The translations under genes were made by a program, and so were the position numbers. This document shows, one piece after another, positions 7,885 through 63,814 of a stretch of DNA of 64,000 nucleotides (positions are counted from its first letter, which is position 1; each line of letters starts with the position of its first letter). The notes beneath the pieces were generated by a model, which saw only the letters and a program-made list of their open reading frames with translations, was not told where the DNA came from and made no database searches. The stretch comes from Macrostomum lignano (lineage: Eukaryota), in contig NIVC01000909.1 in assembly GCA_002269645.1 (NCBI GenBank), positions 304,258-368,257 on the forward strand, read 5' to 3'.

Positions 7885-10800
7885 AGCTTCTTTGGTCTTG
7901 TCAGCCAAGGCGCCGAGATCGATATCGTTCTCGATGGCCAGGAGAGCAGAAAAACTGCCGAATTGAAACTAGAAGATGGCAGAAAAGAGCGCCTGCCTCT
8001 CTATTACGATGGAGAAACAGTTAGCGGCAAAGTGAACATATTAGTGAAGAAGTCTGGAACAAAATTGGAGCACCAGGGCATTAAAATAGAATTCGTTGGT
8101 CAGATTGGTGAGCTACTTTAAGTAGTATATTAGATTTTTTCAGTTAAAAATCCTATATTTCTACTCTAAGTAGTTAAATTAACAAATTCTATCAGATCTC
8201 TACTTTGACCGCGGCAATCGACACGAATTCGTCTCGATGGTCAGAGAGCTGGCAAGGCCCGGCATTCTTACCCAGGGGGTCTGTTATGGCTTCGAATTTG
8301 TCAACGTTGAGAAGCCATACGAGAGCTACTCTGGAGCTAATGTTAGACTGAGGTAAGTTTATATCCATCCTATATACTAAAAATGGTCTGTCTGTGTCTA
8401 TGTGATCGATTAGAGAAAAAATGGCCCTCTGGGTATTTCTCAAAATACCCAGATCGAGAATTGTATCGACTAAAAATTTCTCCTTAACCGCAGATACTAC
8501 TTACGAGTGACAGTAGTCAAACGCCTGAGCGATTTAGTCAAAGAGCAGGACATTTGCGTGCACACACTGGCCCAATATCCTGACTTGAATAGTAGCATTA
8601 AAATGGAAGTCGGCATTGAGGACTGTTTGCACATCGAGTTCGAGTATAACAAATCAAAATATCACCTGAAAGATGTCATAGTTGGTAAAATCTTTTTCCT
8701 ATTGGTTCGAATTAAAATTCGCCACATGGAGGTGCAGATTATTCGGAGAGAGTTAGCGGGCTCCGGTCCGGCCGCTCTGAATGAAAGCGAAACTCTGGCT
8801 AAGTTTGAGATCATGGACGGAGCCCCAGTCAGAGGGGAGTCTATCCCTATTCGATTGTTTCTGAGCGGCTACGATTTGACTCCATCAATGCGAGACGTTA
8901 ATAAGAAGTTCTCGGTGAAATACTATTTGAATCTGGTGCTGGTGGACGAGGAGGAAAGAAGATATTTTAAACAGCAGGTAGAGCTTTCATTCACGTCTGT
9001 CATGCTGCTTTTATACGAGGTAGGGTGGTCATGTGGGGATCAGAGTAGGGTGGTCATGTGTGAGTCAGAGTAGGGTGGTCATGTGGGGGTCAGAGTAGGG
9101 TGGTCATGTGGGGGTCAGAGTAGGGTGGTCATGTGTGGGTCAGAGTAGGGTGGTCATGTGGGGGTCAGAGTAGGGTGGTCATGTGGGGATCAGAGTAGGG
9201 TGGTCATGTGGGGGTCAGGGTAGGGTGGTCAGGTGGGGGTCAGAGTAGGGTGGTCATGTGTGGGTCAGAGTAGGGTGGTCAGGTGGGGGTCAGAGTAGGG
9301 TGGTCATGTGTGGGTCAGAGTAGGGTGGTCAGGTGGGGGTCAGAGTAGGGTGGTCATGTGGGGATCAGAGTAGGGTGGTCATGTGGGGTTCAGGGTAGGG
9401 TGGTCATGTGGGGGTCAGAGTAGGGTGGTCATGTGTGGGTCAGAGTAGGGTGGTCATGTTGGGGTCAGTGTAGGGTGGTCATGTGGGGGTCAGAGTAGGG
9501 TGGTCATGTGTGGGTCAGAGTAGGGTGGTCATGTGGGGGTCAGAGTAGGGTGGTCATGTGGGGGTCAGAGTAGGGTGGTCATGTTGGGGTCAGAGTAGGG
9601 TGGTCATGTTGGGGTCAGAGTAGGGTGGTCAAGTGGGGGTCAGAGTAGGGTGGTCATGTGTGGGTCAGAGTAGGGTGGTCATGTGGGGGTCAGAGTAGGG
9701 TGGTCATGTTGGGGTCAGAGTAGGGTGGTCATGTGTGGGTCAGAGTAGGGTGGTCAGGTGGGGGTCAAGGTAGTGTGGTCAGGTAGGGTGGTCAGGGTAG
9801 GGTGGTCATGTGGGGGTCAGGTAGGGTGGTCATGTGTGGGTCAGAGTAGGGTGGTCATGTGTGGGTCAGAGTAGGGTGGTCATGTGTGGGTCAGAGTAGG
9901 GTGGTCAGGTGGGGGTCAGAGTAGGGTGGTCATGTGGGGGTCAGAGTAGGGTGGTCATGTGTGGGTCAGAGTAGGGTGGTCATGTGGGGGTCAGAGTAGG
10001 GTGGTCATGTTGGGGTCAGAGTAGGGTGGTCATGTTGGGGTCAGAGTAGGGTGGTCATGTGGGGGTCAGAGTAGGGTGGTCATGTGGGGGTCAGAGTAGG
10101 GTGGTCATGTTGGGGTCAGAGTAGGGTGGTCAGGTGGGGGTCAAGGTAGTGTGGTCAGGTAGGGTGGTCAGGGTAGGGTGGTCATGTGGGGGTCAGGTAG
10201 GGTGGTCATGTGTGGGTCAGAGTAGGGTGGTCATGTGTGGGTCAGAGTAGGGTGGTCATGTGGGGGTCAGAGTAGGGTGGTCATGTGTGGGTCAGAGTAG
10301 GGTGGTCATGTTGGGGTCAGAGTAGGGTGGTCATGTGTGGGTCAGAGTAGGGTGGTCATGTTGGGGTCAGAGTAGGGTGGTCATGTGGGGGTCAGAGTAG
10401 GGTGGTCATGTGTGGGTCAGAGTAGGGTGGTCATGTTGGGGTCAGAGTAGGGTGGTCATGTGTGGGTCAGAGTAGGGTGGTCAGGTGGGGGTCAGAGTAG
10501 GGTGGTCATGTGGGGGTCAGAGTAGGGTGGTCATGTTGGGGTCAGAGTAGGGTGGTCATGTGGGGGTCAGAGTAGGGTGGTCATGTGGGGGTCAGAGTAG
10601 GGTGGTCATGTGTGGGTCAGAGTAGGGTGGTCATGTGGGGGTCAGAGTAGGGTGGTCATGTTGGGGTCAGAGTAGGGTGGTCATGGACTCGGGGGTCAGG
10701 GTAGGTAATCATGTGGCGGTCAGGATATGGTAGTCATGTGGGGGTCAGGGTAAGGTGGTCATCTGGGGATCAGGTAGGAGGTAATTTGGGGGGGGTCAGT

Positions 10801-11220
10801 AGGTTTGTCAGGTCATGCAAGGAGTCAAGCGAGTCAGCTGAATTTTTAAATCTCTTAATTTTAACCGCACCGCAGGAGATCACTCTGTTCCGCAGAGCGG
10901 AGAAGCGGCGCAGACCCATAGCAAACAGCTACATTGAGCAGGCGATATTTCATCACAGAACTGCTCAATTCGGTCAACAGCAGCAACCAACTACTCGGGC
11001 TCAGCAGCAGCAGTCGCAAGCGACTCCGCCTTTGACAACGCCGGAGGATGCCGCCGCCGCCGCTATTAGTCCTGGTCGCCATGGCGACGCCAACAACTCA
11101 GCAGCTGATAGTCCCGAGTTGGAGTCCGGCTCTACTCACGTCTCGCCAGCTTTGCCAGCCGCGAGATCGGCACCGGGGATTAAGGATGTGCTCGGAGAAG
11201 ATGATGACGATAACTATTGA
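7885..11220 (+). CDS. VPS26: Vacuolar protein sorting-associated protein 26 (retromer subunit); exons 7885-8107, 8196-8352, 8494-8977, 10876-11220; initiator ATG not located
   Basis: Spliced translation SFFGLVSQGAEIDIVLDG...YYDGETVSGKVNI...LEHQGIKIEFVGQI|DLYFDRGNRHEF...VEKPYESYSGANVRLR|YYLRVTVVKRL...IKMEVGIEDCLHIEFEYNKSKYHLKDVIVGKIFFLLVRIKI...EIMDGAPVRGESIPIRLFL...RRYFKQQ|EITLFRR. All junctions are GT-AG and phase-compatible. Confidence 0.95.
8362..8430 (+). repeat. Short dispersed repeat, possibly a Helitron 5' end; second copy ~48195-48275
   Basis: atccatcctatatactaaaaatggtct...gatcgattagagaaaaaa recurs as atccatctactaaaaatggtct...gatcgattagagaaaaaa near 48195. The Helitron assignment rests only on resemblance to TCTATACTAA-type 5' ends. 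Confidence 0.4.
9020..10800 (+). repeat. 25-bp G-rich minisatellite in VPS26 intron
   Basis: Unit tagggtggtcatgtgggggtcagag in tandem. Confidence 0.95.
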
Positions 11221-12135: not shown

Positions 12136-13377
12136 ATGGAGGATTATCAATTCTTGAATTGCACCAGCAAAAGTTTGAATTCCTTTCAAATAAAACCAGT
12201 GTTTCGTATCCTGAACTGCTACTTTCTTCCTGTTTGTTTATTTATGCTGTAATAAAATTGTTATAATGCACCAGCCCGATTATAACAAACAAATTTCGTT
12301 GTCTGACAAGCTGCTGTTCTAACTGATATTTCTTTACGAGCACCTTAGCGCAGTATTCAACTTATCTCTGTGTTGTTATTATCCTATAATTGCTACTGAA
12401 TAGTCAGTAGTTGATGTTTTTTAAATCGTCTAAAAATGTTTTCTATAATTGCTTATTTGCTTGCCTCACTTTTCCTCTGGGCTAAGAAGCAATTGTTGTA
12501 AATAATATTTTCTCAATGTTTCCTAATATAGTTCATTGTTGTTCCCACTTAAAAATCAATTTTTCGATACATATCGGTAATCGCTTTGCTAGTCAGTCGG
12601 TTTTTCGACCTTCATTTATTAAAACAAAAATTAATCTGGGGAACTTTAAATTTAGTTTTATTTTTTCTTTGTTGTTTATTAAAAATTCTAGTCAAAAATT
12701 ATGCATACTACTTTTAATCTGGCATTACCTCAGTAATTTAAAGTGTTTGTGCAATGCTTTTTAAAAAAACTTTTTCTCTTGAATTTGGTTTTGTTGATTT
12801 TTAATCGATATCAAGTTTTTTAACTTGGTTAAATCATGAAATAAACAATTCAAAAAAATATTGAGTCGTTTCTTACGAGAAAATAAGGCATAAATGACTA
12901 TTTCAAATGTCTTTATCATAGATTTTATTGCATTCGAATGGGGTTTCGGTGCCTGAAAGTTTTAAATCATAAATTGGATGCAGCAGCCAGTTTAGTAGAC
13001 AAACTAATTGTAAATTTAAACAATTAGAAAATATATATTTAAATTGATATTTTCCAGATCTGTAATGTACAACTTAGATTGTAGGTTTTTATTTTAGATT
13101 TGGCTACAAAATTGTAAATTAAATGAAGTCTTGAAATCCCAATAATCCCTATAACTTGTAAAATTACTGATGCAATTCTAATAAAATATCCAGCGTTGAA
13201 AAAAACTGAATTACAGTCTGACATCCGCGATCCAAATTCAGGATGCCAAAGTTTTAAAATTGATGTGTCATGACACGCCGTAAGAGGGCAGAAATGAGCT
13301 ATAGCTTAGGCTAACTAACTAACTTTTTTCCTAAGGCTATGGCTATAGGTAAGAGTCGCTGTACAATGTACAAGCAA

Positions 13378-13717
13378 GAGACACTGGTTGACAGACAGTA
13401 GACACACTGGTAGATAGACAGTAGACACACACTGGTAGATAGACAGTAGACACACACTGGTAGACAGACAGTAGACACACTGGTAGACAGACAGTAGACA
13501 CACTGATAGATAGACAGTAGACACACTGGTAGATAGACAGTAGACACACTGGTAGATAGACAGTAGACACACTGGTAGACAGACAGTAGAAACACCGATA
13601 GATAGACAGTAGACACACTGGTAGACAGACAGTAGACACACTGGTAGACAGACAGTAGACACACTGGTAGATAAGACAGTAGAACACACTGGTAGACAGA
13701 CAGTAGACACACTGGTA
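13378..13717 (+). repeat. 23-bp minisatellite upstream of Cdx (same family as the Cdx intron 1 array)
   Basis: Unit actggtagacagacagtagacac. Confidence 0.9.
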
Positions 13718-13957
13718 GTCAGTTGCAGTGTGCAAAACAGTTTGCACTAACCAACCTGACCCAAGCGCTCCCTCTCTGTGCTGATTGGGCAAGAGCAAAT
13801 ATTGGAACTGGCCAATTAGAGTAACCAGCGTATGAATTCTTATCAATGGACACAGCCAATGTGTGTTGAAATTTTCGTTAAACTAAACGACGTTATAATT
13901 GACATGCAAAGGCGGGAGATTCTCTCATTGAAACCATCGACCATACAGTAGTTCACT

Positions 13958-16740
13958 ATGCAGTCTCAACCTCAGCAACACTGTCTGCAGAATAGATTGA
14001 TCGGATTGGATAGCTGTTGTCTATGTTGTCATGGTTACAACAATAACAAAAACATAAATTGGGAGCAGCAACATCAACAAGTGTCGGTTAATGTTAATAG
14101 AAACACTAGTAATAATCATATCGCGACCGCGTACACCAGACAGGAGCAACGCCTCTGCGCACTGCATCAGTGCAGAAGTGAGTCTGACGGGGCTTGGGTT
14201 GGTTGGCTGCAAAATAGAGACTGTGGTAGCTTATGGATGGATATGGATCGGCTTGTATCGGGCTTGTAGAGATAGATGATAGAATAGTCAGAAATATTAT
14301 GGCAAATAAACATACTGGTAGAAAGATAGGGTGGATTCAGGGTAAAGAGGGTAGACACTGGTAGATAGACAGTAGACACACTGGTAGACACACGGTAGAC
14401 ATACACTGATAGATAGACAGTAGAAATACTGGTAGATAGACAGTAGACACACTAGTAGGCAGACAGTAGACACACTAGTAGATAGACAGTAGACGACACA
14501 CTGGTAGGCAGACAGTAGACACACTGGTAGATAGACAGTAGACACACTGGTAGATAGACAGTAGACACACTGGTAGATAGACAGTAGACACTGGTAGACA
14601 GACAGTAGACACACTGGTAGACAGACAGTAGACACACTGGTAGACAGACAGAAGACACACTGATAGATAGACAGTAGACACACTGGTAGACAGACAGTAG
14701 ACACACTGGTAGATAGACAGTAGACACACTGGTAGACAGACAGTAGACACACTGGTAGATAGACAGTAGACACACTGGTAGACAGACAGTAGACACACTG
14801 ATAGATAGACAGTAGACACACTGGTAGACAGACAGTAGACACACTGATAGATAGACAGTAGACACACTGGTAGACAGACAGTAGACACACTGATAGATAG
14901 ACAGTAGACACACTGGTAGACAGACAGTAGACACACTGGTAGATAGACAGTAGAACACACTGGTAGATAGACAGTAGACACACTGGTAGACAGACAGTAG
15001 ACACACTGGTGGATAGACAGTAGACACACTGGTGGATAGACAGTAGACACACTGGTAGATAGACAGTAAACACTGGTGGATAGACAGTAGACACACTGGT
15101 AGGTAAAATACATCAATGCTACCTCTAACAACTCCCAACGTACAGAGAGCAACCAAAAGACTCGCACAGAGGACACCTACAGGCAGGTGTACACGCCTCA
15201 GCAGCGATTGGAGCTGGAGAAGGAATATCACTATCAGAGGTTCATCGGGTCGAAACGGAAGAAGGAGCTGTCCCTGCTGCTGCAGCTTACTGAGAGACAG
15301 GTTGGTGTCATGGTAATCAGTTTGTGCCAGGTTTCCTCGTAAATTAATTGAATAAATAATTACAGCTGTCTCTAAAATTCTGGTAGCTTCAGCTCTCTTG
15401 AAGTGGCAACCGATTTTGAAAAATGACAACCGATTTTGAAAAATGACAACCGATTTTGAAAAACAGCAACCGATTTTGAAAAACGGCAACCGATTTTGAA
15501 AAATGACAACCGATTTTGAAAAATTTCAGCCAATGTTGAAAAATGGCGACTGATTTTGAGAAATGGCAACCGTTGAAAAAAGAAAAATGAATGAAAAATG
15601 AAAAAGTGGCAACCGATTTTGAATAGCCAACAATTTTTTAAAAAGGCAACCAATCTTGATAAAAGTGGAAACCGATTTTGAAGAAAGATTGGCACCCCAT
15701 CTCAAAATGGCACCCCATCTCAAAATGGCACCCTGAAGTGATCTTAATTTAAGCATGTTATGCCCAATGTTTTTTTTAGTCTAATGCGAACTTCAGAAGG
15801 TTTTTCTATCAGGAAAGTACAGCACATGCTTGTGCGCCAGTAAAGATCCTATTGCGTGAAGCGAACACCAATGAAATGCGTTATAGAAATCATATATATA
15901 CTAGCGTTCAGTGAGAATGAAGCCTCTCTCCAGTTTTTTCCCGGTTCTCGGCTCTCCGCCTCTTTGCCTCCTCAACTGCTCCGCTAGCTTGCCCCAACAA
16001 TCGGGCCTGAACTCTAATATCCCGATTTAACAGAGATAAATCCGGACAAACGTCAATTCGTGCAACAATATCGATAAGTAGCCTGTGGCTCCATTTTCAC
16101 TGAATTGCTTAACAAATTTGCGTAATTGCGTGATCAATATCCTATTAGGAATTGCTACTAACATTGATTAGTAATAAACATCTTGTTGAAGGTTAGAGAT
16201 CGAGAGAAACAAATCGAACCTCCGACTTATTTGATTCAACAGAAACATCAACGATCATAGTCATCGTCAGAGGGGCACACCCCCGCAACACATTATTCTA
16301 AAACATTTGAACCCCAATCTCAAAATGGCACTCCATCTCAAAATGGCAACCCAATCTCAAAATGGCACTCCATCTCAAAATGGATCTCAAAATGGCACCA
16401 AAAACCTCAAAATGGCACTCCATCTCAAAATGGCACCCCATCTCAAAATGGCACCCCAATCTCAAAATGGCATACATTTATAGGAAAGTATCGGCAACAG
16501 CTATCAATAGTTCTCATAAAACCGTTTCAATTTCAGATAAAAATCTGGTTTCAAAATCGTCGCGCCAAGGACCGCCGACAGGCGAAGCTTCATCAGCAGC
16601 AACTGGAAGCTGGAGCGGCGATGATCTCTGGATCTGCATCATCGGTGAGCGGCAGCAACGCCGCCGCCGCCGCCGCAATCCCATGGTCTAGCAATCCGCC
16701 AGTTATTCCGTTGAAAACAATTGGAACAGCTTTTTATTAA
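13958..16740 (+). CDS. Cdx: Caudal/Cdx ParaHox homeodomain protein; exons 13958-14177, 15146-15300, 16537-16740 (192 aa)
   Basis: Exon 2 reads [50 protein letters not shown] and exon 3 reads [15 protein letters not shown], matching the Cdx signature [24 protein letters not shown]...[16 protein letters not shown]. Donor gtgagt at 14178; branch point ctaac and acceptor cag at 15145; donor gt at 15301; acceptor tttcag at 16536; TAA at 16738-16740. Exon 1 is less certain than exons 2-3. Confidence 0.9.
14350..15102 (+). repeat. 23-bp minisatellite filling Cdx intron 1
   Basis: Unit actggtaga(c/t)agacagtagacac. Confidence 0.9.
15400..15530 (+). repeat. 20-bp tandem repeat in Cdx intron 2
   Basis: Unit aaccgattttgaaaaatgac; degenerate copies continue to ~15685. 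Confidence 0.85.
16310..16472 (+). repeat. 18-bp tandem repeat in Cdx intron 2 (also 15690-15735)
   Basis: Unit caccccatctcaaaatgg. Confidence 0.85.
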
Positions 16741-16929
16741 ACAAATCCTTTCAGTTCATGCAAGTCGTTGTGAACATCATGCCATTTTTTGCGCTGTATT
16801 AAATACATAGCACGTACAAGCGCAAGCAAATAAGTGAATTAGCAATTTGCATCATTTATGCTGTCTTATATGATTGTTTTCACTGAATTCCTACATGGGA
16901 TGTGCGGACACATATACAGTTAGTAATAT

Positions 16930-24745: not shown

Positions 24746-27700
24746 TAAGCCAATCGTTTCACAATCCATTCAAAGCCCGGCCTCAGAGACGCCGCCTCGG
24801 CCATGCAACGCGCTACGACGTCCTTGATAACTACCACAGCTGCCGCGGGTTCAGGCAGTTCAAGTCGATCTCCTCGGCGCAGACGGTTGAGAATGTCGCC
24901 AGGAGTGCCGGCGCCATGCCACGGCGTGGGCCGCCCAGCTGGACAGCGGCGACAGCAGTGCAGCTCCCAGACGCAGACGCCGAAACTCCAAACGTCGGTG
25001 GACTCGGTTGAGGCTGTCGCAGGTTGAGGATCGGAGAGCGAGACGGCCAGTTCGAGTAGCTCAGGCGGATACCAGCGGCCAACTTCTAGGGCAGTGTTGT
25101 GTCTGGGCAGATCGAAATCCAATTGGGATTTGAAAGGGTTTCAAAGGGGGTTTGAAAATGACGATCTGGGAAAGTTGAAATCCTCAAATGACGATCTGGG
25201 AAAGTTTAAATCCTCAAATGAGGATCTGGGAAAGTTGAAATCCTCAAATGACGATCTGGGACAGTTTAAATCCTCAAATGAGGATCTGGGAAAGTTGAAA
25301 TCCTCAAATGACGATCTGGGAAAGTTTAAATCCTCAAATGAGGATCTGGGATAGTTTAAATCCTCAAATGAGAATCTGGGAAAGTTGAAATCCTCAAATG
25401 ACGATCTGGGAAAGTTGAAATCCTCAAATGAGGATCTGGGAAAGTTGAAATCCTCAAATGACGATCTGGGAAAGTTTAAATCCTAAAATGAGGATCTGGG
25501 AAAGTTGAAATCCTCAAATGACGATCTGGGAAAGTTTAAATCCTCAAATGAGGATCTGTGATAGTTGAAATCCTCAAATGACGATCTGGGAAAGTTTAAA
25601 TCCTCAAATGAGGATCTGGGATAGTTTAAATCCTCAAATGACGATCTGTGATAGTTTAATAGTTTAAATCCTCAAATGAGGATCTGGGATAGTTTAAATC
25701 CTCAAATGACAATCTGTGATAGTTTAATAGTTTAAATCCTCAAATGAGGATCTGGGATAGTTGAAATCCTCAAATGAGGATCTGTGATAGTTGAAATCCT
25801 CAAATGAGGATCTGTGATAGTTGAAATCCTCAAATGAGGATCTGGGATAGTTGAAATCCTCAAATGAGGATCTGGGATAGTTGAAATCCTCAAATGAGGA
25901 TCTGTGATAGTTGAAATCCTCAAATGAGGATCTGTGATAGTTTAAATCCGCAAACGAGGATCTGGGAGAGTTGAAATCCTCAAATGACGATCTGGGAAAA
26001 TTTAAATCCTCAAATGAGGATCTGGGATAGTTGAAATCCTCAAATGAGGATCTGGGATAGTTTAAATCCTCAAATGACGATCTGTGATAGTTTAATAGTT
26101 TAAATCCTCAAATGAGGATCTGGGATAGTTGAAATCCTCAAATGAGGATCTGGGATAGTTGAAATCCTCAAATGAGGATCTGGGATAGTTGAAATCCTCA
26201 AATGAGGATCTGTGATAGTTGAAATCCTCAAATGAAGATCTGTGATAGTTGAAATCCTCAAATGAGGATCTGGGATAGTTGAAATCTTCAAATGAGGATC
26301 TGGGATATTTGAAATCCTCAAATGAGGATCTGGGATAGTTGAAATCCTCAAATGAGGATCTGGGATAGTTGAAATCTTCAAATGAGGATCTGGGAAAGTT
26401 GAAATCCTCAAATGAGGATCTGGGATAGTTGAAATCCTCAAATGAGGATCTGTGATATTTGAAATCCTCAAATGAGGATCTGGGATAGTTGAAATCCTCA
26501 AATGAGGATCTGGGATAGTTGAAATCCTTAAATGAGGATCTGTGATATTTGAAATCCTCAAATGAGGATCTGGGATATTTGAAATCTTCAAATGAGGATC
26601 TGGGATAGTTTAAATCCTCAAATGAGGATCTGGGATAGTTGAAATCCTCAAACGAGGATCTGGGATAGTTGAAATCCTCAAATGAGGATCTGTGATAGTT
26701 GAAATCCTCAAATGAGGATCTGGGATAGTTGAAATCCTCAAATGAGGATCTGGGATAGTTGAAATCCTCAAACGAGGATCTGGGATAGTTGAAATCCTCA
26801 AATGAGGATCTGTGATAGTTGAAATCCTCAAATGAGGATCTGGGATAGTTGAAATCTTCAAATGAGGATCTGGGAAAGTTGAAATCCTCAAATGAGGATC
26901 TGGGATAGTTGAAATCCTCAAATGAGGATCTGGGATATTTGAAATCTTCAAATGAGGATCTGGGATAGTTTAAATCCTCAAATGAGGATCTGGGATAGTT
27001 GAACTCCTCAAATGAGGATCTGTGATGTTTGAAATCCTCAAATGAGGATCTGGGATAGTTGAAATCCTCAAATGAGGATCTGGGATAGTTGAAATCCTTA
27101 AATGAGGATCTGTGATATTTGAAATCCTCAAACGAGGATCTGGGATATTTTAAATCGTTAAATGAGGATCTGGGATAGTTGAAATCCTCAAATGACGATC
27201 TGGGAAAGTTTAAATCCTCAAATGAGGATCTGGGATAGTTTAAATCCTCAAATGACGATCTGTGATAGTTTAATAGTTTAAATCCTCAAATGAGGATCTG
27301 GGATAGTTTAAATCCTCAAATGACGATCTGTGATAGTTTAATAGTTTAAATCCTCAAATGAGGATCTGGGATAGTTGAAATCTTCAAATGAGGATCTGGG
27401 ATAGTTTAAATCCTCAAATGAGGATCTGGGATAGTTGAAATCCTCAAACGAGGATCTGGGATAGTTGAAATCCTCAAATGAGGATCTGTGATAGTTGAAA
27501 TCCTCAAATGAGGATCTGGGATAGTTGAAATCCTCAAATGAGGATCTGGGATAGTTGAAATCCTCAAACGAGGATCTGGGATAGTTGAAATCCTCAAATG
27601 AGGATCTGTGATAGTTTAAATCCTTAAATGAGGATCTGGGATAGTTGAAATCCTCAAATGAGGATCTGGGATAGTTTAAATCCTCAAATGACGATCTGTG

Positions 27701-30700
27701 ATAGTTTAATAGTTTAAATCCTCAAATGAGGATCTGGGATAGTTGAAATCCTCAAATGAGGATCTGGGATAGTTGAAATCCTCAAATGAGGATCTGGGAT
27801 AGTTGAAATCCTCAAATGAGGATCTGTGATAGTTGAAATCCTCAAATGAGGATCTGGATAGTTGAAATCCTCAAATGAGGATCTGGGATAGTTGAAATCC
27901 TCAAATGAGGATCTGGGATATTTGAAATCCTCAAATGAGGATCTGGGATAGTTGAAATCCTCAAATGAGGATCTGGGATAGTTGAAATCCTCAAATGAGG
28001 ATCTGGGATAGTTGAAATCCTCAAATGAGGATCTGGGATAGTTGAAATCCTCAAATGAGGATCTGTGATAGTTGAAATCCTCAAATGAGGATCTGGATAG
28101 TTGAAATCCTCAAATGAGGATCTGGGATAGTTGAAATCCTCAAATGAGGATCTGGGATAGTTGAAATCCTCAAATGAGGATCTGGGATAGTTGAATCCTC
28201 AAATGAGGATCTGGGATATTTGAAATCCTCAAATGAGGATCTGGGATATTTGAAATCCTCAAATGAGGATCTGGGATAGTTGAAATCCTCAAATGAGGAT
28301 CTGGGATAGTTGAAATCCTCAAATGAGGATCTGGGATAGTTAAATCCTCAAATGAGGATCTGGATAGTTGAAATCCTCAAATGAGGATCTGGATAGTTGA
28401 AATCCTCAAATGAGGATCTGTGATAGTTGAAATCCTCAAATGAGGATCTGTGATAGTTGAAATCCTCAAATGAGGATCTGTGATATTTGAAATCTTCAAA
28501 TGAGGATCTGGGATATTTGAAATCCTCAAATGAGGATCTGGGATAGTTGAAATTCTCAAACGAGGATCTGGGATAGTTGAAATCCTCAAATGAGGATCTG
28601 GGATAGTTGAAATCCTCAAATGAGGATCTGGGATATTTGAAATCCTCAAATGAGGATCTGGGATAGTTGAAATCCTCAAATGAGGATCTGGGATAGTTGA
28701 AATCCTCAAATGAGGATCTGGGATAGTTGAAATCCTCAAATGAGGATCTGGGATAGTTGAAATCCTCAAATGAGGATCTGGGATAGTTGAAATCCTCAAA
28801 TGAGGATCTGGGATAGTTGAAATCCTCAAATGAGGATCTGGGATAGTTGAAATCCTCAAATGAGGATCTGGGATAGTTGAAATCCTCAAATGAGGATCTG
28901 GGATAGTTGAAATCCTCAAATGAGGATCTGGGATAGTTGAAATCTCAAATGAGGATCTGGGATAGTTGAAATCCTCAAATGAGGATCTGGGATAGTTGAA
29001 ATCCTCAAATGAGGATCTGGGATATTTGAAATCCTCAAATGAGGATCTGGGATAGTTGAAATCCTCAAATGAGGATCTGTGATAGTTGAAATCCTCAAAT
29101 GAGGATCTGGATAGTTTGAAATCCTCAAATGAGGATCTGGGATAGTTGAAATCCTCAAATGAGGATCTGGGATAGTTGAAATCCTCAAATGAGGATCTGG
29201 ATATTTGAAATCCTCAAATGAGGATCTGGGATATTTAAATCCTCAAATGAGGATCTGGGATAGTTTAAATCCTCAAATGAGGATCTGGGATAGTTGAAAT
29301 CCTCAAATGAGGATCTGGATAGTTGAAATCCTCAAATGAGGATCTGGATAGTTGAAATCCTCAAATGAGGATCTGGGATAGTTGAAATCCTCAAATGAGG
29401 ATCTGGGATAGTTGAAATCCTCAAATGAGGATCTGGGATAGTTGAAATCCTCAAATGAGGATCTGTGATAGTTTGAAATCCTCAAATGAGGATCTGTGAT
29501 ATTTGAAATCCTCAAATGAGGATCTGGATAGTTGAAATCCTCAAATGAGGATCTGGGATAGTTGAAATCCTCAAATGAGGATCTGGGATAGTTGAAATCC
29601 TCAAATGAGGATCTGGATAGTTGAAATCCTCAAATGAGGATCTGTGATATTTGAAATCCTCAAATGAGGATCTGGGATATTTGAAATCCTCAAATGAGGA
29701 TCTGGGATAGTTGAAATCCTCAAATGAGGATCTGGGATAGTTGAATCCTCAAATGAGGATCTGGGATATTTGAAATCCTCAAATGAGGATCTGGGATAGT
29801 TGAAATCCTCAAATGAGGATCTGGGATAGTTGAAATCCTCAAATGAGGATCTGGGATAGTTGAAATCCTCAAATGAGGATCTGGGATAGTTGAAATCCTC
29901 AAATGAGGATCTGGGATAGTTGAAATCCTCAAATGAGGATCTGGGATAGTTGAAATCCTCAAATGAGGATCTGGGATAGTTGAAATCCTCAAATGAGGAT
30001 CTGTGATAGTTGAAATCCTCAAATGAGGATCTGGATATTTGAAATCCTCAAATGAGGATCTGGGATAGTTGAAATCCTCAAATGAGGATCTGGGATAGTT
30101 GAAATCCTCAAATGAGGATCTGGGATAGTTGAAATCCTCAAATGAGGATCTGGGATATTTGAAATCCTCAAATGAGGATCTGGGATAGTTTGAAATCCTC
30201 AAATGAGGATCTGGATATTTGAAATCCTCAAATGAGGATCTGGGATATTTGAAATCCTCAAATGAGGATCTGGGATAGTTGAAATCCTCAAATGAGGATC
30301 TGGGATAGTTGAAATCCTCAAATGAGGATCTGGGATAGTTGAAATCCTCAAATGAGGATCTGGGATATTTGAAATCCTCAAATGAGGATCTGGGATAGTT
30401 GAAATCCTCAAATGAGGATCTGGGATAGTTGAAATCCTCAAATGAGGATCTGGGATAGTTGAAATCCTCAAATGAGGATCTGGGATAGTTGAAATCCTCA
30501 AATGAGGATCTGGGATAGTTGAAATCCTCAAATGAGGATCTGGGATATTTGAAATCCTCAAATGAGGATCTGGGATAGTTTGAAATCCTCAAATGAGGAT
30601 CTGGGATAGTTGAAATCCTCAAATGAGGATCTGTGATAGTTTGAAATCCTCAAATGAGGATCTGGGATAGTTGAAATCCTCAAATGAGGATCTGGGATAG

Positions 30701-33700
30701 TTGAAATCCTCAAATGAGGATCTGGGATATTTGAAATCCTCAAATGAGGATCTGGGATATTTGAAATCCTCAAATGAGGATCTGGGATAGTTTAAATCCT
30801 CAAATGAGGATCTGGGATAGTTGAAATCCTCAAATGAGGATCTGGGATAGTTGAAATCCTCAAATGAGGATCTGGATAGTTGAAATCCTCAAATGAGGAT
30901 CTGGGATAGTTGAAATCCTCAAATGAGGATCTGGGATAGTTGAAATCCTCAAATGAGGATCTGGGATAGTTGAAATCCTCAAATGAGGATCTGGATAGTT
31001 GAAATCCTCAAATGAGGATCTGTGATATTTGAAATCCTCAAATGAGGATCTGGGATAGTTTAAATCCTCAAATGAGGATCTGGGATATTTGAAATCTTCA
31101 AATGAGGATCTGGGATAGTTGAAATCCTCAAATGAGGATCTGGGATATTTGAAATCCTCAAATGAGGATCTGGGATAGTTGAAATCCTCAAATGAGGATC
31201 TGGGATATTTGAAATCCTCAAATGAGGATCTGGGATATTTGAAATCCTCAAATGAGGATCTGGGATAGTTGAAATCCTCAAATGAGGATCTGGGATATTT
31301 GAAATCCTCAAATGAGGATCTGGGATATTTGAAATCCTCAAATGAGGATCTGGGATAGTTTGAAATCCTCAAATGAGGATCTGGGATAGTTGAAATCCTC
31401 AAATGAGGATCTGGGATAGTTGAAATCCTCAAATGAGGATCTGGGATATTTGAAATCCTCAAATGAGGATCTGGGATAGTTGAAATCCTCAAATGAGGAT
31501 CTGGGATAGTTGAAATCCTCAAATGAGGATCTGGGATAGTTGAAATCCTCAAATGAGGATCTGGGATAGTTGAAATCCTCAAATGAGGATCTGGGATAGT
31601 TGAAATCCTCAAATGAGGATCTGGGATAGTTGAAATCCTCAAATGAGGATCTGGGATAGTTGAAATCCTCAAATGAGGATCTGGGATATTTGAAATCCTC
31701 AAATGAGGATCTGGGATAGTTGAAATCCTCAAATGAGGATCTGGGATAGTTGAAATCCTCAAATGAGGATCTGGGATAGTTGAAATCCTCAAATGAGGAT
31801 CTGGGATATTTGAAATCCTCAAATGAGGATCTGGGATAGTTGAAATCCTCAAATGAGGATCTGGGATAGTTGAAATCCTCAAATGAGGATCTGGGATAGT
31901 TGAAATCCTCAAATGAGGATCTGGGATAGTTGAAATCCTCAAATGAGGATCTGGGATATTTGAAATCCTCAAATGAGGATCTGGGATATTTGAAATCCTC
32001 AAATGAGGATCTGGGATAGTTGAAATCCTCAAATGAGGATCTGGGATAGTTGAAATCCTCAAATGAGGATCTGGGATAGTTGAAATCCTCAAATGAGGAT
32101 CTGGGATAGTTGAAATCCTCAAATGAGGATCTGGGATAGTTTAAATCCTCAAATGAGGATCTGGGATAGTTGAAATCCTCAAATGAGGATCTGGGATATT
32201 TGAAATCCTCAAATGAGGATCTGGGATAGTTGAAATCCTCAAATGAGGATCTGGGATAGTTGAAATCCTCAAATGAGGATCTGGGATAGTTGAAATCCTC
32301 AAATGAGGATCTGGGATAGTTGAAATCTCAAATGAGGATCTGGGATAGTTGAAATCTCAAATGAGGATCTGGGATAGTTGAAATCCTCAAATGAGGATCT
32401 GGGATATTTGAAATCCTCAAATGAGGATCTGGGATAGTTGAAATCCTCAAATGAGGATCTGGGATAGTTGAAATCCTCAAATGAGGATCTGGATAGTTGA
32501 AATCCTCAAATGAGGATCTGGGATAGTTGAAATCCTCAAATGAGGATCTGGGATAGTTTAAATCCTCAAATGAGGATCTGGGATAGTTGAAATCCTCAAA
32601 TGAGGATCTGGGATATTTGAAATCCTCAAATGAGGATCTGGGATAGTTGAATCCTCAAATGAGGATCTGGGATAGTTGAAATCCTCAAATGAGGATCTGG
32701 ATATTTGAAATCCTCAAATGAGGATCTGGGATAGTTGAAATCCTCAAATGAGGATCTGGGATATTTGAAATCCTCAAATGAGGATCTGGGATAGTTGAAA
32801 TCCTCAAATGAGGATCTGGGATAGTTTAAATCCTCAAATGAGGATCTGGGATAGTTTAAATCCTCAAATGAGGATCTGGGATAGTTGAAATCCTCAAATG
32901 AGGATCTGTGATAGTTGAAATCCTCAAATGAGGATCTGTGATAGTTTTAGAAATCCTCAAATGAGGATCTGGGATAGTTTAAATCCTCAAATGAGGATCT
33001 GGGATAGTTGAAATCCTCAAATGAGGATCTGGGATAGTTGAAATCCTCAAATGAGGATCTGGATAGTTGAAATCCTCAAATGAGGATCTGTGATAGTTGA
33101 AATCCTCAAATGAGGATCTGGGATAGTTGAAATCTTCAAATGAGGATCTGGGATATTTGAAATCCTCAAATGAGGATCTGGGATAGTTGAAATCCTCAAA
33201 TGAGGATCTGGGATAGTTGAAATCTTCAAATGAGGATCTGGGAAAGTTGAAATCCTCAAATGAGGATCTGGGATAGTTGAAATCCTCAAATGAGGATCTG
33301 GGATATTTGAAATCTTCAAATGAGGATCTGGGATAGTTTAAATCCTCAAATGAGGATCTGGGATAGTTGAAATCCTCAAATGAGGATCTGGGATATTTGA
33401 AATCTTCAAATGAGGATCTGGGATAGTTTAAATCCTCAAATGAGGATCTGTGATAGTTGAAATCCTCAAATGAGGATCTGTGATATTTGAAATCCTCAAA
33501 TGAGGATCTGGGATAGTTGAAATCCTCAAATGAGGATCTGGGATAGTTGAAATCCTCAAATGAGGATCTGTGATATTTGAAATCCTCAAATGAGGATCTG
33601 GGATATTTGAAATCCTCAAATGAGGATCTGGGATAGTTGAAATCCTCAAATGAGGATCTGGGATAGTTGAAATCCTCAAATGAGGATCTGGGATATTTGA

Positions 33701-36700
33701 AATCCTCAAATGAGGATCTAGGAAAGTTGAAATCCTCAAATGAGGATCTGGGATAGTTGAAATCCTCAAATGAGGATCTGGGATAGTTGAAATCCTCAAA
33801 TGAGGATCTGGGATATTTGAAATCCTCAAATGAGGATCTGGGATAGTTGAAATCCTCAAATGAGGATCTGGGATAGTTGAAATCCTCAAATGAGGATCTG
33901 TGATATTTGAAATCCTCAAATGAGGATCTGGGATAGTTGAAATCCTCAAATGAGGATCTGGGATATTTGAAATCCTCAAATGAGGATCTGGGATAGTTGA
34001 ATCTCAAATGAGGATCTGGGATAGTTGAAATCCTCAAATGAGGATCTGGGATAGTTGAAATCCTCAAATGAGGATCTGGGATATTTGAAATCCTCAAATG
34101 AGGATCTGGGATAGTTGAAATCCTAAATGAGGATCTGTGATATTTGAAATCCTCAAATGAGGATCTGGGATAGTTGAAATCCTCAAATGAGGATCTGGGA
34201 TAGTTGAAATCCTCAAATGAGGATCTGGGATATTTGAAATCCTCAAACGAGGATCTGGGATAGTTGAAATCCTCAAATGAGGATCTGGGATAGTTTAAAT
34301 CCTCAAATGAGGATCTGGGATAGTTTAAATCCTCAAATGAGGATCTGGGATATTTGAAATCCTCAAATGAGGATCTGGGATAGTTGAACTCCTCAAATGA
34401 GGATCTGGGATAGTTGAAATCCTCAAATGAGGATCTGTGATATTTGAAATCCTCAAATGAGGATCTGGGATATTTGAAATCCTCAAATGAGGATCTGGGA
34501 TAGTTGAAATCCTCAAATGAGGATCTGGGATAGTTGAAATCCTCAAATGAGGATCTGGGATATTTGAAATCCTCAAATGAGGATCTAGGAAAGTTGAAAT
34601 CCTCAAATGAGGATCTGGGATAGTTGAAATCCTCAAATGAGGATCTGGGATAGTTGAAATCCTCAAATGAGGATCTGGGATATTTGAAATCCTCAAATGA
34701 GGATCTGGGATAGTTGAACTCCTCAAATGAGGATCTGGGATAGTTGAAATCCTCAAATGAGGATCTGTGATATTTGAAATCCTCAAATGAGGATCTGGGA
34801 TAGTTGAAATCCTCAAATGAGGATCTGGGATATTTGAAATCCTCAAATGAGGATCTGGGATAGTTGAACTCTTCAAATGAGGATCTGGGATAGTTGAAAT
34901 CCTCAAATGAGGATCTGGGATAGTTGAAATCCTCAAATGAGGATCTGGGATATTTGAAATCCTCAAATGAGGATCTGGGATAGTTGAAATCCTTAAATGA
35001 GGATCTGTGATATTTGAAATCCTCAAATGAGGATCTGGGATAGTTGAAATCCTCAAATGAGGATCTGGGATAGTTGAAATCCTCAAATGAGGATCTGGGA
35101 TATTTGAAATCCTCAAACGAGGATCTGGGATAGTTGAAATCCTCAAATGAGGATCTGGGATAGTTTAAATCCTCAAATGAGGATCTGGGATAGTTTAAAT
35201 CCTCAAATGAGGATCTGGGATATTTGAAATCCTCAAATGAGGATCTGGGATAGTTGAACTCCTCAAATGAGGATCTGGGATAGTTGAAATCCTCAAATGA
35301 GGATCTGTGATATTTGAAATCCTCAAATGAGGATCTGGGATAGTTGAAATCCTCAAATGAGGATCTGGGATAGTTGAAATCCTCAAATGAGGATCTGGGA
35401 TAGTTGAAATCCTCAAATGAGGATCTGGGATAGTTGAAATCCTCAAATGAGGATCTGGGATAGTTGAAATCCTCAAATGAGGATCTGGGATAGTTGAACT
35501 CCTCAAATGAGGATCTGGGATATTTGAAATCCTCAAATGAGGATCTGGGATAGTTGAAATCCTCAAATGAGGATCTGGGATAGTTGAAATCCTCAAATGA
35601 GGATCTGGGATAGTTGAAATCCTCAAATGAGGGTCTGGGATAGTTGAACTCCTCAAATGAGGATCTGGGATAGTTTAAATCCTCAAATGAGGATCTGGGA
35701 TAGTTGAAATCCTCAAATGAGGATCTGTGATAGTTGAAATCCTCAAATGAGGATCTGGGATAGTTGAACTCCTCAAATGAGGGTCTGGGATGTTTGAAAT
35801 CTTTAAGTTAGGATCTGAAACAATGAAAAAACTCAAATCAGAAACCTGGGAAGAATCTATTCACTCACTTATCAAATCCAGTAGTCATCAAATCAGTCAA
35901 TCCAAAGTCGGACACTTTAGCGACCAGTTTGTCAGCGCCGGAGTCGCTCCCAGTACCGACAGTCAATAAAATATTCCTCGCACTCAGTCGACCATGCCGA
36001 CAGCCTTTGGAGGCCAGATAGGCCATGCCTTGAGCAGCTTGAGCACACCAGCGTCTCAAATCTAGCGGCCTAGATTCTGGCGACTGTCTGATTGCATAGT
36101 CTATGGCCGAACCCGCGGAGCAGAGCTCATTGAGTATCATGAGTTTATTATTAGCCGATTCAAGACAGATGCCAACAAAGCCAACTAGACTCTTGTGTGA
36201 CAACTGAGACAGTTTCACATCGGCTAGAGATTTTAGCGCTTTCGATGAGTCGTTAAATGAACGGACATTGGGCGTTAGAACTTTAATGGCAACATTTGCT
36301 GTTGAATTTGATGCCCTACTGCTGCTATTACTAGTAGTAGTAGTTGAAGATAACAAACGACCGTTGAACATATCAATTTCCGCTGCTGTGTTGCCACTAA
36401 TTCTTGACAATAGCAGCACTTGGCTTAGTGGGATTAATCCCAGCTGCTGGTGGTGAGAGCTTGGCCGAACTGAACTTGGCGGAATGGGGCGCTGAAGCCG
36501 GCAGGGAATTCCGTCAGGGATGCGAGTCAAATAGTCGATTAGGTGACCTGCGGTTGACGCGATGAGAGGGGCCATTTGTTTGGATTGTTTTGAAGGCCGA
36601 TTCTGCAAGGGCGATTCTGCAGGAGCGATTCTGCAGGGGCGATTCTGCAGGGGCGATTCTACAGGGGCGATTCTGCAGGGGCGATTCTGAAGGGGCGATT

Positions 36701-38570: not shown

Positions 38571-39507
38571 AGTCTCGTGGTTGATTCTCTCATCGCTCTC
38601 TCTCCGATTCTCATTTCTGGTTCTCTCATCTGACTCTCTCTTATCCCTGATTCTCTTAGCTGACTCTCTCATTACCTGATCCTGCCATCCCCTGACTCTT
38701 CTACCTCCTGACTCGCACCCTGACTCTCCCACAGCATTTTCAAGTGTCAGATTTTGTCCACCTAAAGCTAACCTGTGGATCAGCTTTCCCCAGCGTGAGC
38801 AGCAGCTCCACAACGCTGACAAAATCTTTCTGAGCAGCTCGATGCAACGCAGAATAACCAGCGCAGTCCCACAGTGCCGTATTTGCCCCAGCCTCCAACA
38901 GCAGTCTAACAGAATCGGCATTGCCAGTCTTAGCTGCATCAATCAAAGCTGTAGAACCGGTATCTGCTGATTTCTCATTCACAATAGATATTGACAACTG
39001 ACCACTACTACTAGTAGTAGTCTTAGCCAACTGTAACAAGCTTAACAATAAGCGACGAATTTCTAATGTATCGCCGCGACGTACAGCCTCGTGCAGGGGG
39101 GTGGTTGTGCCATAGACTATCAGCTCCGCGGGCGGAGGCTCCTGCGCTTGTACGTGCCTACCCAACCGTCTGACAATGCCGCCCGATGCTTCAACTAGAG
39201 CCCTACTAAAATCAGTTAGCAACAAATCCAAGCCGAGAAATTTCGATTCAGTTCCTCTTAATTGATAGAAACCATCGTCCAATCGATCAATTGGATAGTG
39301 ATAGATCGAGCCGTCAGTGTGCAGCAATGACAGAACATATTTGCCAGTGGCGCTGGAATATCTAACTAGATAGTCGCCATGGCCGCCTTGAGCGTGTAAA
39401 CGACGCTCAGTTTCTTCGCGACCCAACTGGCCGTGAAACCAGTATGGACGCTGCTTCTGCTGCATGAGATGTTTAAATAATCCAGTTAGTGCCTTGTGTC
39501 TCTTCAT
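24745..39507 (-). CDS. shark: SH2-ankyrin-SH2 tyrosine-kinase-family protein (SHARK/HTK16 type), probable pseudokinase; exons 39507-38773, 38183-37953, 37543-37123, 36547-35869, 25102-24745
   Basis: SH2 ([15 protein letters not shown]...GDYLVRYS); ankyrin repeats ([40 protein letters not shown]); second SH2 (WYHPSLSR...GDFLVRLS); kinase motifs [40 protein letters not shown]. All five exons join with compatible phases (0,0,1,2). Confidence 0.85.
25150..35815 (+). repeat. ~10.7 kb 30-bp satellite (~355 units) filling the last SHARK intron (25103-35868)
   Basis: Unit gaggatctgggatagttgaaatcctcaaat; source of all [10 protein letters not shown] and YPRSSFEDF ORFs. Confidence 0.97.
36600..37030 (+). 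repeat. 14-15-bp minisatellite in SHARK intron
   Basis: Unit ggggcgattctg(c/a)ag. Confidence 0.9.
37584..37946 (+). repeat. (GACA/GGCA)n microsatellite in SHARK intron
   Basis: Direct reading of the sequence. Confidence 0.95.
38270..38720 (+). repeat. CT-rich repeat and (CT)n tract in SHARK intron
   Basis: ctctcatccctgatt...gactctctct units plus (ct)n at ~38523-38568. Confidence 0.85.
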
Positions 39508-39734: not shown

Positions 39735-40667
39735 AAATTGCTAAGATGTCAAGGCTTATGGTATGGGGGGAGGGGAATTGCTTAGATGTCAAGGCTTATG
39801 GGGGGAGGGGAATCGCTAAGATGTCAAGGCTTATGGGGGAGGGGAATCGCTAAGATGTCAAGGCTTATGGTATGGGGGGAGGGGAATTGCTAAGATGTCA
39901 AGGCTTATGGGGGAGGGGAATCGCTAAGATGTCAAGGCTTATGGGGGGAGGGGAATCGCTAAGATGTCAAGGCTTATGGGGGAGGGGAATCGCTAAGATG
40001 TCAAGGCTTATGGGGGGAGGGGAATCGCTAAGATGTCAAGGCTTATGGGGGAGGGGAATCGCTAAGATGTCAAGGCTTATGGGGGAGGGGAATCGCTAAG
40101 ATGTCAAGGCTTATGGGGGGAGGGGAATCGCTAAGATGTCAAGGCTTATGGGGGGAGGGGAATCGCTAAGATGTCAAGGCTTATGGGGGAGGGGAATCGC
40201 TAAGATGTCAAGGCTTATGGGGGGAGGGGAATCGCTAAGATGTCAAGGCTTATGGGGGAGGGGAATCGCTAAGATGTCAAGGCTTATGGGGGAGGGGAAT
40301 CGCTAAGATGTCAAGGCTTATGGGGGAGGGGAATTGCTAAGATGTCACGGCTTATGGGGGAGGGGAATTGCTGAGATGTCAAGGCTTGTGGGGGAGGGGA
40401 ATTGCTAAGATGTCAAATCTTGTGGGGGGAGGGGAATTGCTAAGATGTCAAGGCTTATGGGGAGAGGGGAATCGCTAAGATGTCAAGGCTTGTGGGGGAG
40501 GGGAATTGCTGAGATGTCAAGGCTTGTGGGGGAGGGGAATTGCTGAGATGTCAAGTCTTGTGGGAGAGGGGAATTGCTGAGATGTCAAGGCTTGTAGAGG
40601 AGGGGAATTGCTGAGATGTCAAGGCTTGTAGAGGAGGGGAATTGCTGAGATGTCAAGGCTTGTGGGG
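39735..40667 (+). repeat. 34-35-bp G-rich minisatellite (continues at 44686-44890 beyond the P element)
   Basis: Unit gggggaggggaatcgctaagatgtcaaggcttat. Confidence 0.9.
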
Positions 40668-43600: not shown

Positions 43601-44685
43601 GGAGGCGCTGGTTGGTTCTTGCCAGACGGTGAGGCTGGCGGCAATCAAGGACCAAGGAGGTTTGTTCCGCCCATCTGCTGACTTGTGCCGCTGTGTGCAT
43701 TTCTGTGAGCTTCAACGCCGCGCCATTTCGCTTGGTGCCTTCAACTGCAAGACAGTTGACATGTTGGTCGCATCATCCGTGAGCGCAGCACTCTCCCAAG
43801 GTGTATTCGCTTCCCTGTCCTGTCATCAAGGCTCTGATGAAAATCATCGGTACTTTCTCATTCGGAGCATCAGTGAGAAGTACGCATTTGTTCGACTTGC
43901 CAACTCAATTCGGAGCTTCAACTTGTCAGCCAAGAGCTCAGTGCGCCACCAGCTATGTAAGAAAGTTATTTTTCTTGGACAGTAATTTTGTTTACTTTTT
44001 TTTCATTGGCCAGAAGCCAACGATTGTAAAAACAATACTTGGTTGACGTGTCGCGGTGCTTCGCTTTACTAAAAACTTCATTTACGTGCCAATGGCTTCT
44101 CTCTATTGCGTCCCACTTTTTGAGAATTGAGATGCTCTTCTCAATGATCCAAGTCATAAAAATAATAATCTATCAGGCTGAATATGCTCTGCATTTTGCG
44201 CAATTTTTTATTATGATTTCGCTAAACTGTTTCACAATTTTTGCCAGACTTTTATTTTATGGCTAATGTCGTTTTCCAGTTTGCTCATACGAGTATTAGT
44301 TTATTCACTTCAATGTTATAATAAAACAGCAAAAAAACTGACATTGTCACGACGAATTTTGTCTTGTCTTTGGCTTTTAACTGCATGAGTGTTTATTTTA
44401 ACTACTAAACTGAACTTCTAAGAAAAAAGAAAACTGTTTGTTGCTTCATTTAATCAAGAAAAAGTATGCTAGTGTTGCTGGAAAATTTGAATCACGTTTT
44501 TTATACAAGTTGCAAGTCCTTTAAGGAAGAAAGATAATAGAAAAGCGGAGTTGGGGGAATGTACACACATGGACTCAATGTGCATAGCGTGGCCCAGCCA
44601 ATAGGAGCGCAGTGAATAAAGTGATGGTCACAATTTAGACACTCCGCGAGGGTAGGGGTGGAATCTATGGTATACTTTATCTATG
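40668..44685 (+). mobile_element. Full-length P-element superfamily DNA transposon (4018 bp)
   Basis: Perfect 32-bp TIR catagataaagtataccatagattccacccct (40668-40699 and 44654-44685). Perfect 8-bp TSD ttgtgggg (40660-40667 and 44686-44693). Encodes a THAP-transposase. Confidence 0.95.
40892..43985 (+). CDS. THAP-domain P-element (THAP9-like) transposase; exons 40892-42549, 42842-43179, 43352-43985; apparent 1-bp frameshift near 42870-42895
   Basis: THAP domain CSALGCNS...FFAYP...WL...LCELHF. Catalytic-region motifs VIDAMHIR, LVCDCAAVN, FFDNCHLLKLVRN, YKVCQDPLEHFFGEVRQRGGFNNNP, QFR|AAYRAL, YIAGYI, CISC, GGLFRPS. Donors gtgagt at 42550 and 43180; acceptors cag at 42841 and 43351. Confidence 0.9.
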
Positions 44686-63648: not shown

Positions 63649-63814
63649 CTGATAAGGGTTCAAGCAAATATGATGATTCTGACTTGTATTAGCGAATAAA
63701 TAAACACGCTTTATATGCTACTTAGTAAGTAGGTAAACTGTGCGAACGTGTGTATGAGTGCGTGTCTCGAATTGCCGTAGCAACTACAGGTTGAGACCAT
63801 GACGCTCACAGGTC

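Follow-up and report, generated by a model that had tools for sequence, protein, structure and literature searches.

A homeobox gene between VPS26 and a deoxynucleoside kinase gene

The window analyzed here, a 64-kb stretch of the Macrostomum lignano assembly GCA_002269645.1 (Mlig_3_7; contig NIVC01000909.1), contains a putative third Cdx/caudal gene of this flatworm, which lies between a VPS26 gene and a deoxynucleoside kinase (dNK) gene and has 14 kb of the window upstream and 47 kb downstream of it (Table 1). When the six-frame translation of the window was scanned with a homeodomain hidden Markov model (HMM), the matches were confined to two segments, namely exon 2 (72 bits, E = 4e-21) and exon 3 (27.6 bits, E = 3e-7) of this gene; both are far above chance, and the next-best fragment (E = 0.5) is noise. 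An earlier interpretation made from the DNA letters alone (hereafter, the sequence-only reading) had proposed that two homeobox exons, which the open-reading-frame track did not translate, join across an intron at the Q/V-or-I site of helix 3, and this is what we found: the GT-AG intron separates homeodomain position 44 from 45 and is in phase 0. An intron at this position of the homeobox is general to Cdx genes, and vertebrate Cdx genes comprise three exons with an intron at 44/45. The spliced three-exon model of the window gene encodes a protein of 192 amino acids, in which the Pfam Homeodomain model (PF00046) scores 62.9 bits (E = 2.4e-17).

No homeobox other than those in exons 2 and 3 was detected by the HMM scan within the window. 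The accompanying claim that neither Gsx nor Xlox stands beside the gene is, within these 64 kb, correct, and linkage in a ParaHox cluster is not seen there. Many animals have broken ParaHox clusters, so the missing linkage to Gsx or Xlox has no bearing on Cdx membership.

Assignment of the homeodomain to the Cdx family

Among the PDB matches of the homeodomain, the six best were human CDX1 and CDX2 (76-83 bits), followed by an engrailed construct (68 bits) and by ftz/Antp (58-61 bits), and the named matches among 5.8 billion proteins were nearly all CDX, caudal, or CHOX-CAD. Homeodomain identity is 65-76% to Cdx sequences (61% to a marsupial CDX4-like sequence), whereas no Hox sequence exceeds 59%, and the values are 54% for Pdx1, 44-50% for Post1/2, 44% for Mnx, and 41-43% for Gsx. 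With human CDX1 and CDX2 (PDB 7Q3O, 5LUX, 6ES3, and 5LTY), to which it is 67-69% identical, the window gene has in common the arm extension, the segment LELEKE[FY]H, and the recognition helix WFQNRRAK[ED]R; it differs from them by K3T, V6Q, D10P, T27G, I28S, and A32K, and by having no upstream EWMRK-type motif.

Positions were taken as Cdx-diagnostic if conservation of their residue reached 80% or more in 22 Cdx sequences and did not exceed 10% in 39 non-Cdx sequences. All seven diagnostic residues (Asp2, Tyr4, Val7, Arg13, Lys31, Ala54, and Arg57) are kept in the window gene. The Cdx-type arm extension occurs together with the Cdx-type residues (KTRTKDKYRVVY; R13; K31; A54; R57), the KTRT-D-YR arm extension being retained, and the helix-3 core (Trp48, Phe49, Gln50, Asn51, and Arg53) and Arg5 of the arm are all present.

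For phylogenetic analysis by neighbor joining (NJ), reference sequences were taken from Table S1 of Currie et al., from Figure S1 of Lapraz et al., from PDB alignments, and from named database matches, and sequences of MNX1 and PDX1 of human and of cad of Drosophila were added. With the Cdx-specific arm removed (54 positions), a Cdx clade including the window gene received bootstrap support of 85%, 87%, and 88%, whereas a Cdx clade without it appeared in 0-1% of the replicates. In this comparison with Cdx, posterior Hox, and Mnx, which the sequence-only reading had put forward as a check, the gene never grouped with Post1/2 or Mnx. Judged by structure matches, database names, tree, and diagnostic residues, the homeodomain is of the Cdx type and is placed inside the Cdx clade, and the family assignment made by the sequence-only reading is upheld.

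In the course of this work, a Tinamus guttatus database protein named 'Hox-B4-like' was seen to combine a Cdx-type first half of the homeodomain with a Hox4-type second half; it looks like a chimeric gene model and was left out of the NJ tree.

Gene structure and the proposed first exon

Exon 2 is preceded by a CAG acceptor at 15143-15145, in the context GTACAG, and is followed by the donor GTTGGT from 15301 (CAG/GTTGGT at 15300/15301), while exon 3 begins behind a TTTCAG acceptor (TTTCAG/ATA at 16536/16537). The splice motifs of M. lignano are a GT[G/A]AG donor and a CAG acceptor (PMC8629364), and the splice sites of the gene agree with them. The CAG acceptor of exon 2, which lies four codons before KTRT, needs an upstream exon ending in phase 1. 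Between the VPS26 stop codon (11220) and exon 2, only two ATG-initiated open reading frames (ORFs) end at a GT[AG]AG donor, both at the 14178 donor, and of these only the ORF starting at 13958 pairs with the CAG acceptor at 15146, the join being in frame (phase 1, A + AG = Lys). Its phase and its GTGAGT donor are those of intron 1 in the published paralogue Mlig Cdx1, and none of the three copies of the locus described below has lost its reading frame. Because it is the only ORF that pairs with the CAG acceptor and has splice motifs typical of the species, 13958-14177 is predicted to be exon 1, as the best model available.

Table 1. Features of the Cdx locus and its neighbors (window coordinates)
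Feature	Position	Strand	Remarks
VPS26 (BOX15_Mlig014688g2)	7888-11220	+	Upstream neighbor; Pfam Vps26, 9e-79; 100% identical to PAA86719.1
25-bp G-rich tandem array	9020-10792		∼71 copies; fills the last VPS26 intron
Proposed exon 1	13958-14177	+	ATG + 73 codons + 1 base, phase 1; donor GAA/GTGAGT at 14178
Intron 1 (968 nt)	14178-15145	+	Mostly a 23-bp tandem array, 14355-15102
Exon 2	15146-15300	+	Arm KTRTEDTYR and homeodomain positions 1-44; homeobox from 15169
Intron 2 (1236 nt)	15301-16536	+	GT...AG, phase 0; short tandem arrays, e.g., 15404-15572
Exon 3	16537-16740	+	Homeodomain positions 45-60 (16537-16584); 51-residue tail with Ala run; TAA at 16738-16740
ATTAAA, possible poly(A) signal	16798-16803	+	58 nt past the stop codon; suggested by the sequence only
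dNK, last coding exon	21935-21588	-	Downstream neighbor, convergent with the Cdx gene; Pfam dNK, 4.2e-15

Two other candidates for the 5' end were set aside. Read-through past the 14178 donor, which would yield a hexapeptide-like motif, is not preferred, as it needs a weak CTT/GTATCG donor and a minor acceptor at 15148. The ORF at 10711-11220 was rejected as an upstream Cdx exon because it contains the final VPS26 exon (EITLFRRAEKRR...), which lies past the 25-bp array and matches PAA86719.1 at 100%.

A motif check bore out the observation that the proposed exon 1 has no clear YxWM hexapeptide, as no YxWM-type motif was present in it. No hexapeptide-like motif, either of the YEWM(R/K)K type or resembling KAWKQKKR or KSWRQKRR of Mlig Cdx1/2, is present in the gene; such a motif is common in the Cdx family and is not required for the homeodomain assignment.

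A 23-bp repeat family (..ACACTGGTAGACAGACAGTAG..) occurs on both sides of the proposed exon 1, at 13377-13722 in the 5' flank and at 14355-15102 in intron 1. A search of intron 2 for inverted repeats, as would be expected of a foldback element, found none.

Comparison with the known flatworm Cdx genes

Cdx is not new to M. lignano. Lapraz et al. (2013) aligned Ml_Cdx, Ml_Gsx1/2, and Ml_Xlox of this species and also reported Cdx in a polyclad (PMC4124852); Currie et al. (2016) stated that M. lignano 'clearly has Cdx homologs' and gave the transcripts Cdx1 and Cdx2 (PMC4815179); and Leite et al. (2022) found Cdx and Gsx in a polyclad genome (PMC9469890). The sequence-only reading had set the gene against the general view that Cdx is lost from planarians and parasitic flatworms; the surprise that this implies is not supported, as M. 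lignano belongs to neither of these groups and its Cdx was already published. What is new is a third paralogue, absent from the published lists and from the GenBank annotation, and no mention of a third M. lignano Cdx was found in the literature searched.

In the homeodomain, the window gene is 76% identical to Mlig Cdx2 (48/63 residues) and 70% identical to Mlig Cdx1, with which the Ml_Cdx of Lapraz et al. (RNA918_2379) coincides in the homeodomain region. Since its homeodomain differs by 24-30% from those of Cdx1 and Cdx2, sequence comparison identifies the window gene as a third M. lignano Cdx paralogue that corresponds to neither published transcript.

Mlig Cdx2 (RNA1310_9296.1; PMC4815179, Table S1), the nearest homeodomain, has YRQVY, EKEYHYQ, ERQIKIW, and RRQ in common with the window gene. 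The likeness ends at the arm, as BLASTP found no similarity to Cdx2 upstream of KTRT: Cdx2 comprises at least 399 amino acids, with a long Q/A-rich N-terminus and the block SSDEALSP...LQQEMIKSWRQKRR, whereas the N-terminus predicted for the window gene has ∼73 amino acids and no detectable similarity to it. Upstream of the homeodomain, Cdx1 and Cdx2 have a block of the form SSDEALSP..LQQE..K.W.QK.R..CEM in common.

Mlig Cdx1 (PAA67209.1 / BOX15_Mlig012559g1) has the same three-exon layout as the window gene, with (i) a phase-1 intron with GTGAGT before KTRT, and (ii) a phase-0 intron at 44/45 (ERQ/IKIW). Its first intron (TGC G/GTGAGT ... CGCAG/AG ATG AAG ACT) ends two codons before KTRT, whereas that of the window gene ends four codons before it. 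Unlike the window gene, Cdx1 is annotated in GenBank and matches a published transcript, and its N-terminus is conserved with that of Cdx2.

The polyclad Cdx proteins, namely Mc_Cdx of Maritigrella/Prostheceraeus crozieri and Dt_Cdx of Discocelis tigrina, have YRQVY, Gln23, and the S/T-K/R-RK-SEL region in common with the window gene, whereas their homeodomain identity to it is only 65-67%. Gln6 (in YRQVY) and Gln23 occur in both Mlig Cdx1/2 and both polyclad Cdx proteins, and Tyr20 in three of these four. The divergence that the sequence-only reading had ascribed to the homeodomain is in part real, as six residues (K3T and five more) are seen in no other Cdx of the comparison set, whereas YRQVY, Gln23, and Tyr20 are part of the flatworm Cdx signature. 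A flatworm Cdx clade was not recovered in the NJ tree (6% bootstrap). The polyclad genes mark the survival of Cdx in early-branching flatworms, and the picture of ParaHox loss in flatworms already in the literature, with Cdx kept in Macrostomum and polyclads and lost in triclads and parasites, stands.

Three copies of the locus and their annotation

The assembly contains three copies of the VPS26-Cdx-dNK region, on NIVC01000268.1, on NIVC01000909.1 (the window), and on NIVC01000245.1, with an overall identity of 92-97%, in agreement with the duplicated karyotype of the line that was sequenced. Over 16.2 kb, the NIVC01000909.1 copy matches the window at 100% identity. In all three, the reading frame and the four canonical splice sites are intact, with no stops or frameshifts. 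Exon 2 is 100% identical among the copies; exon 1 varies by K31N in NIVC01000268.1 and by an in-frame 6-nt deletion in NIVC01000245.1, and exon 3 only by a single extra in-frame GCC in NIVC01000268.1, so that the exonic indels are confined to 3 and 6 nt. Intron 2 measures 1236 nt in the window, 1256 nt in NIVC01000245.1, and 734 nt in NIVC01000268.1, and identity is only ∼90%, with gaps, in the 177 nt preceding the ATG and in the 3' untranslated region of NIVC01000245.1. This comparison leans weakly towards constraint. A stronger case for function comes from the divergence of 24-30% from the paralogues, across which all of the diagnostic and DNA-contact residues have been kept.

The description of the gene as hidden is apt for GenBank, where it is missing from all three copies, but a partial model exists in UniProt/WormBase ParaSite. 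This entry, A0A1I8JPZ0, is an unnamed 'Homeobox domain-containing protein' of 117 amino acids that starts at exon 2 and is 100% identical to the exon 2+3 protein over 81% of its length, including the homeodomain. Its tail corresponds to the +1 frame of window positions 16660-16740, following the GCC run, a frameshift found in none of the three GenBank copies; this tail is probably an artefact of the assembly or the gene model, such as an indel in an older assembly.

A functional third Cdx gene or a silent copy

We consider it likely that the locus represents a third, divergent Cdx/caudal gene of M. lignano (provisionally, 'Cdx3') between VPS26 and the deoxynucleoside kinase gene. A number of observations weigh against this. 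The trees are distance-based (NJ) and draw on 54-61 sites, and relations within Cdx are weak, with the three M. lignano genes grouping together in 26-41% of the replicates. Of the sites that do not vary among the 22 other Cdx sequences, only position 3 is altered (K3T), and an exhaustive HMMER search outside M. lignano found no orthologue of more than 68% identity. In none of the three copies does GenBank annotate a gene in the interval from VPS26 to the kinase. These copies are too similar to demonstrate purifying selection: the conservation of the exons is equalled in the 5' part of intron 1 (99.4% identity), and the in-frame exon indels sit in trinucleotide repeats. The three-exon structure proposed by the sequence-only reading stands in its layout, which equals that of Mlig Cdx1, but exon 1 has no support from homology. 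It had no homologue among the 5.8e9 proteins searched, none of which shares even three 5-mers with it, and no Pfam match; its local alignment with the N-termini of Mlig Cdx1/2 was no better than with shuffled sequences (z ∼0); and the block upstream of the homeodomain in Cdx1/2, sought by tblastn as a true 5' exon elsewhere, occurs nowhere in the window.

That the gene is not Cdx, and is instead another ANTP-class homeobox (posterior Hox, Mnx, Gsx, or Xlox) resembling it, could be argued from the six residues absent from all other Cdx compared and from a phylogeny made by NJ only. Against these points stand the gap between its identity to Cdx and to any non-Cdx sequence, the near-absence of a Cdx grouping that excludes it, and the complete set of diagnostic residues together with the arm extension, which leave this explanation most improbable. 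A silent or decaying duplicate, i.e., a Cdx copy without the conserved N-terminus that is no longer transcribed and is intact only through the recent divergence of the copies, has more in its favor. The annotation lacking a gene in all three copies is transcriptome-based (PMC5730564), the upstream motif of Cdx1/Cdx2 is missing, K3T alters an invariant arm site alongside five other substitutions unique in the comparison set, no orthologue was detected elsewhere, and both introns as well as the 5' flank are dense with tandem repeats. However, none of the three copies contains a stop or a frameshift, all four splice sites are conserved, and the diagnostic and DNA-contact residues are all kept; moreover, 76% identity to the nearest paralogue implies a long divergence, over which the frame has nevertheless stayed open and Cdx-like. 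The missing gene model could also be accounted for by the annotation pipeline, which discarded transcripts overlapping repeats (PMC5730564), as the repeats flanking exon 1 could have caused this gene to be filtered out. On balance, we regard a silent copy as unlikely.

A further alternative concerns the 5' end alone. If a spliced leader (SL) were trans-spliced at the exon 2 acceptor, the AUG of the leader would start a protein of ∼120 amino acids, and 13958-14177 would be noncoding. The M. lignano SL ends in ...TTGCATG, and 30-39% of the genes are trans-spliced; the acceptor region is a tandem CAGAGAG, in which the AG at 15146-15147 (exon from 15148) would put the SL AUG in the homeodomain frame; the UniProt model begins exactly at SNQK, the point matching a trans-spliced start; VPS26 lies on the same strand, 2.7 kb upstream; and the lack of homologues of exon 1 likewise favors such a start. 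In contrast, with the preferred CAG acceptor (exon start at 15146) the SL AUG is not in frame and an early stop follows, the acceptor context GTACAG is unlike the reported trans-splice motif [T/C]TNCAG, and an upstream GTGAGT donor in fitting phase exists, as in Cdx1. We therefore hold the trans-spliced start to be distinctly improbable, and prefer the three-exon model.

In the three-exon model, the short, nonconserved 5' exon would supply the start codon of a protein of ∼192 amino acids. From what is known of the family, this protein would be a sequence-specific homeodomain transcription factor that recognizes Cdx-type sites, presumably contacting DNA through Arg5 in the minor groove and through Ile47, Gln50, Asn51, and Ala54 of helix 3, as in the CDX1/2-DNA structures. 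A duplication in the flatworm or macrostomid lineage is the probable origin of the gene, which has lost the block that Cdx1 and Cdx2 have in common upstream of the homeodomain; without this N-terminal block, the protein may act as a truncated or specialized Cdx. The chances appear about even that this third Cdx is functional, having been missed by the inventories and by GenBank, with a stripped-down N-terminus and a probably restricted expression (e.g., embryonic or cell-type-specific). If so, macrostomids expanded and subfunctionalized Cdx, while neoophorans (triclads, flukes, and tapeworms) lost it.

The finding brings the Cdx genes listed among the ParaHox genes of this flatworm model species from two to three, and points out a gene that the GenBank annotation lacks at each of the three copies of its locus. 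It also offers an additional target for evolutionary developmental studies on the role of Cdx in an animal with a blind gut.

Neighboring genes and other features of the window

The neighbors named by the sequence-only reading, VPS26 and a nucleoside kinase, were both confirmed by their Pfam domains (Table 1). The VPS26 range was taken from the GenBank annotation of contig NIVC01000909.1. A paralogue of VPS26 with 74% identity exists elsewhere in the M. lignano genome, and a check for a paralogous Cdx found no homeobox within 10 kb of it. For the kinase, a dNK gene of 287 amino acids is annotated at the equivalent place in the copies on NIVC01000268.1 and NIVC01000245.1.

Tandem repeats abound in the window, as fits the M. 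lignano genome (PMC5730564). A single array, of 10.6 kb at 25156-35817, consists of ∼354 copies of a 30-bp unit (AAATGAGGATCTGGGATAGTTGAAATCCTC) with 94% matches, and its strong, constant GC skew gives rise to long spurious ORFs on the minus strand. A P-element/THAP9-like transposase ORF at 40844-42553 (plus strand) has THAP, Tnp_P_element, RNase H-like, and GTP-binding insertion domains, and a separate ORF at 43410-43985 (plus strand) matches the THAP9 C-terminal domain slightly below the Pfam threshold; 33-34-bp tandem arrays lie on either side of this element, at 39766-40667 and 44686-44912.

An ORF of ∼330 amino acids with weak NHL-repeat similarity is found in three copies, at 48608-49630 (minus strand), 50775-51779 (plus strand), and 54748-55476 (plus strand), whose N-terminal halves are near-identical; two of them are inverted relative to each other, and the third is truncated or recombined. 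On the minus strand, an ORF at 38740-39507 carries an SH2 domain and ankyrin repeats and is probably an exon of a larger signaling gene, and a leucine-rich-repeat-like ORF at 62861-63688 has a frame that continues into a 33-bp tandem array at 62144-63113.

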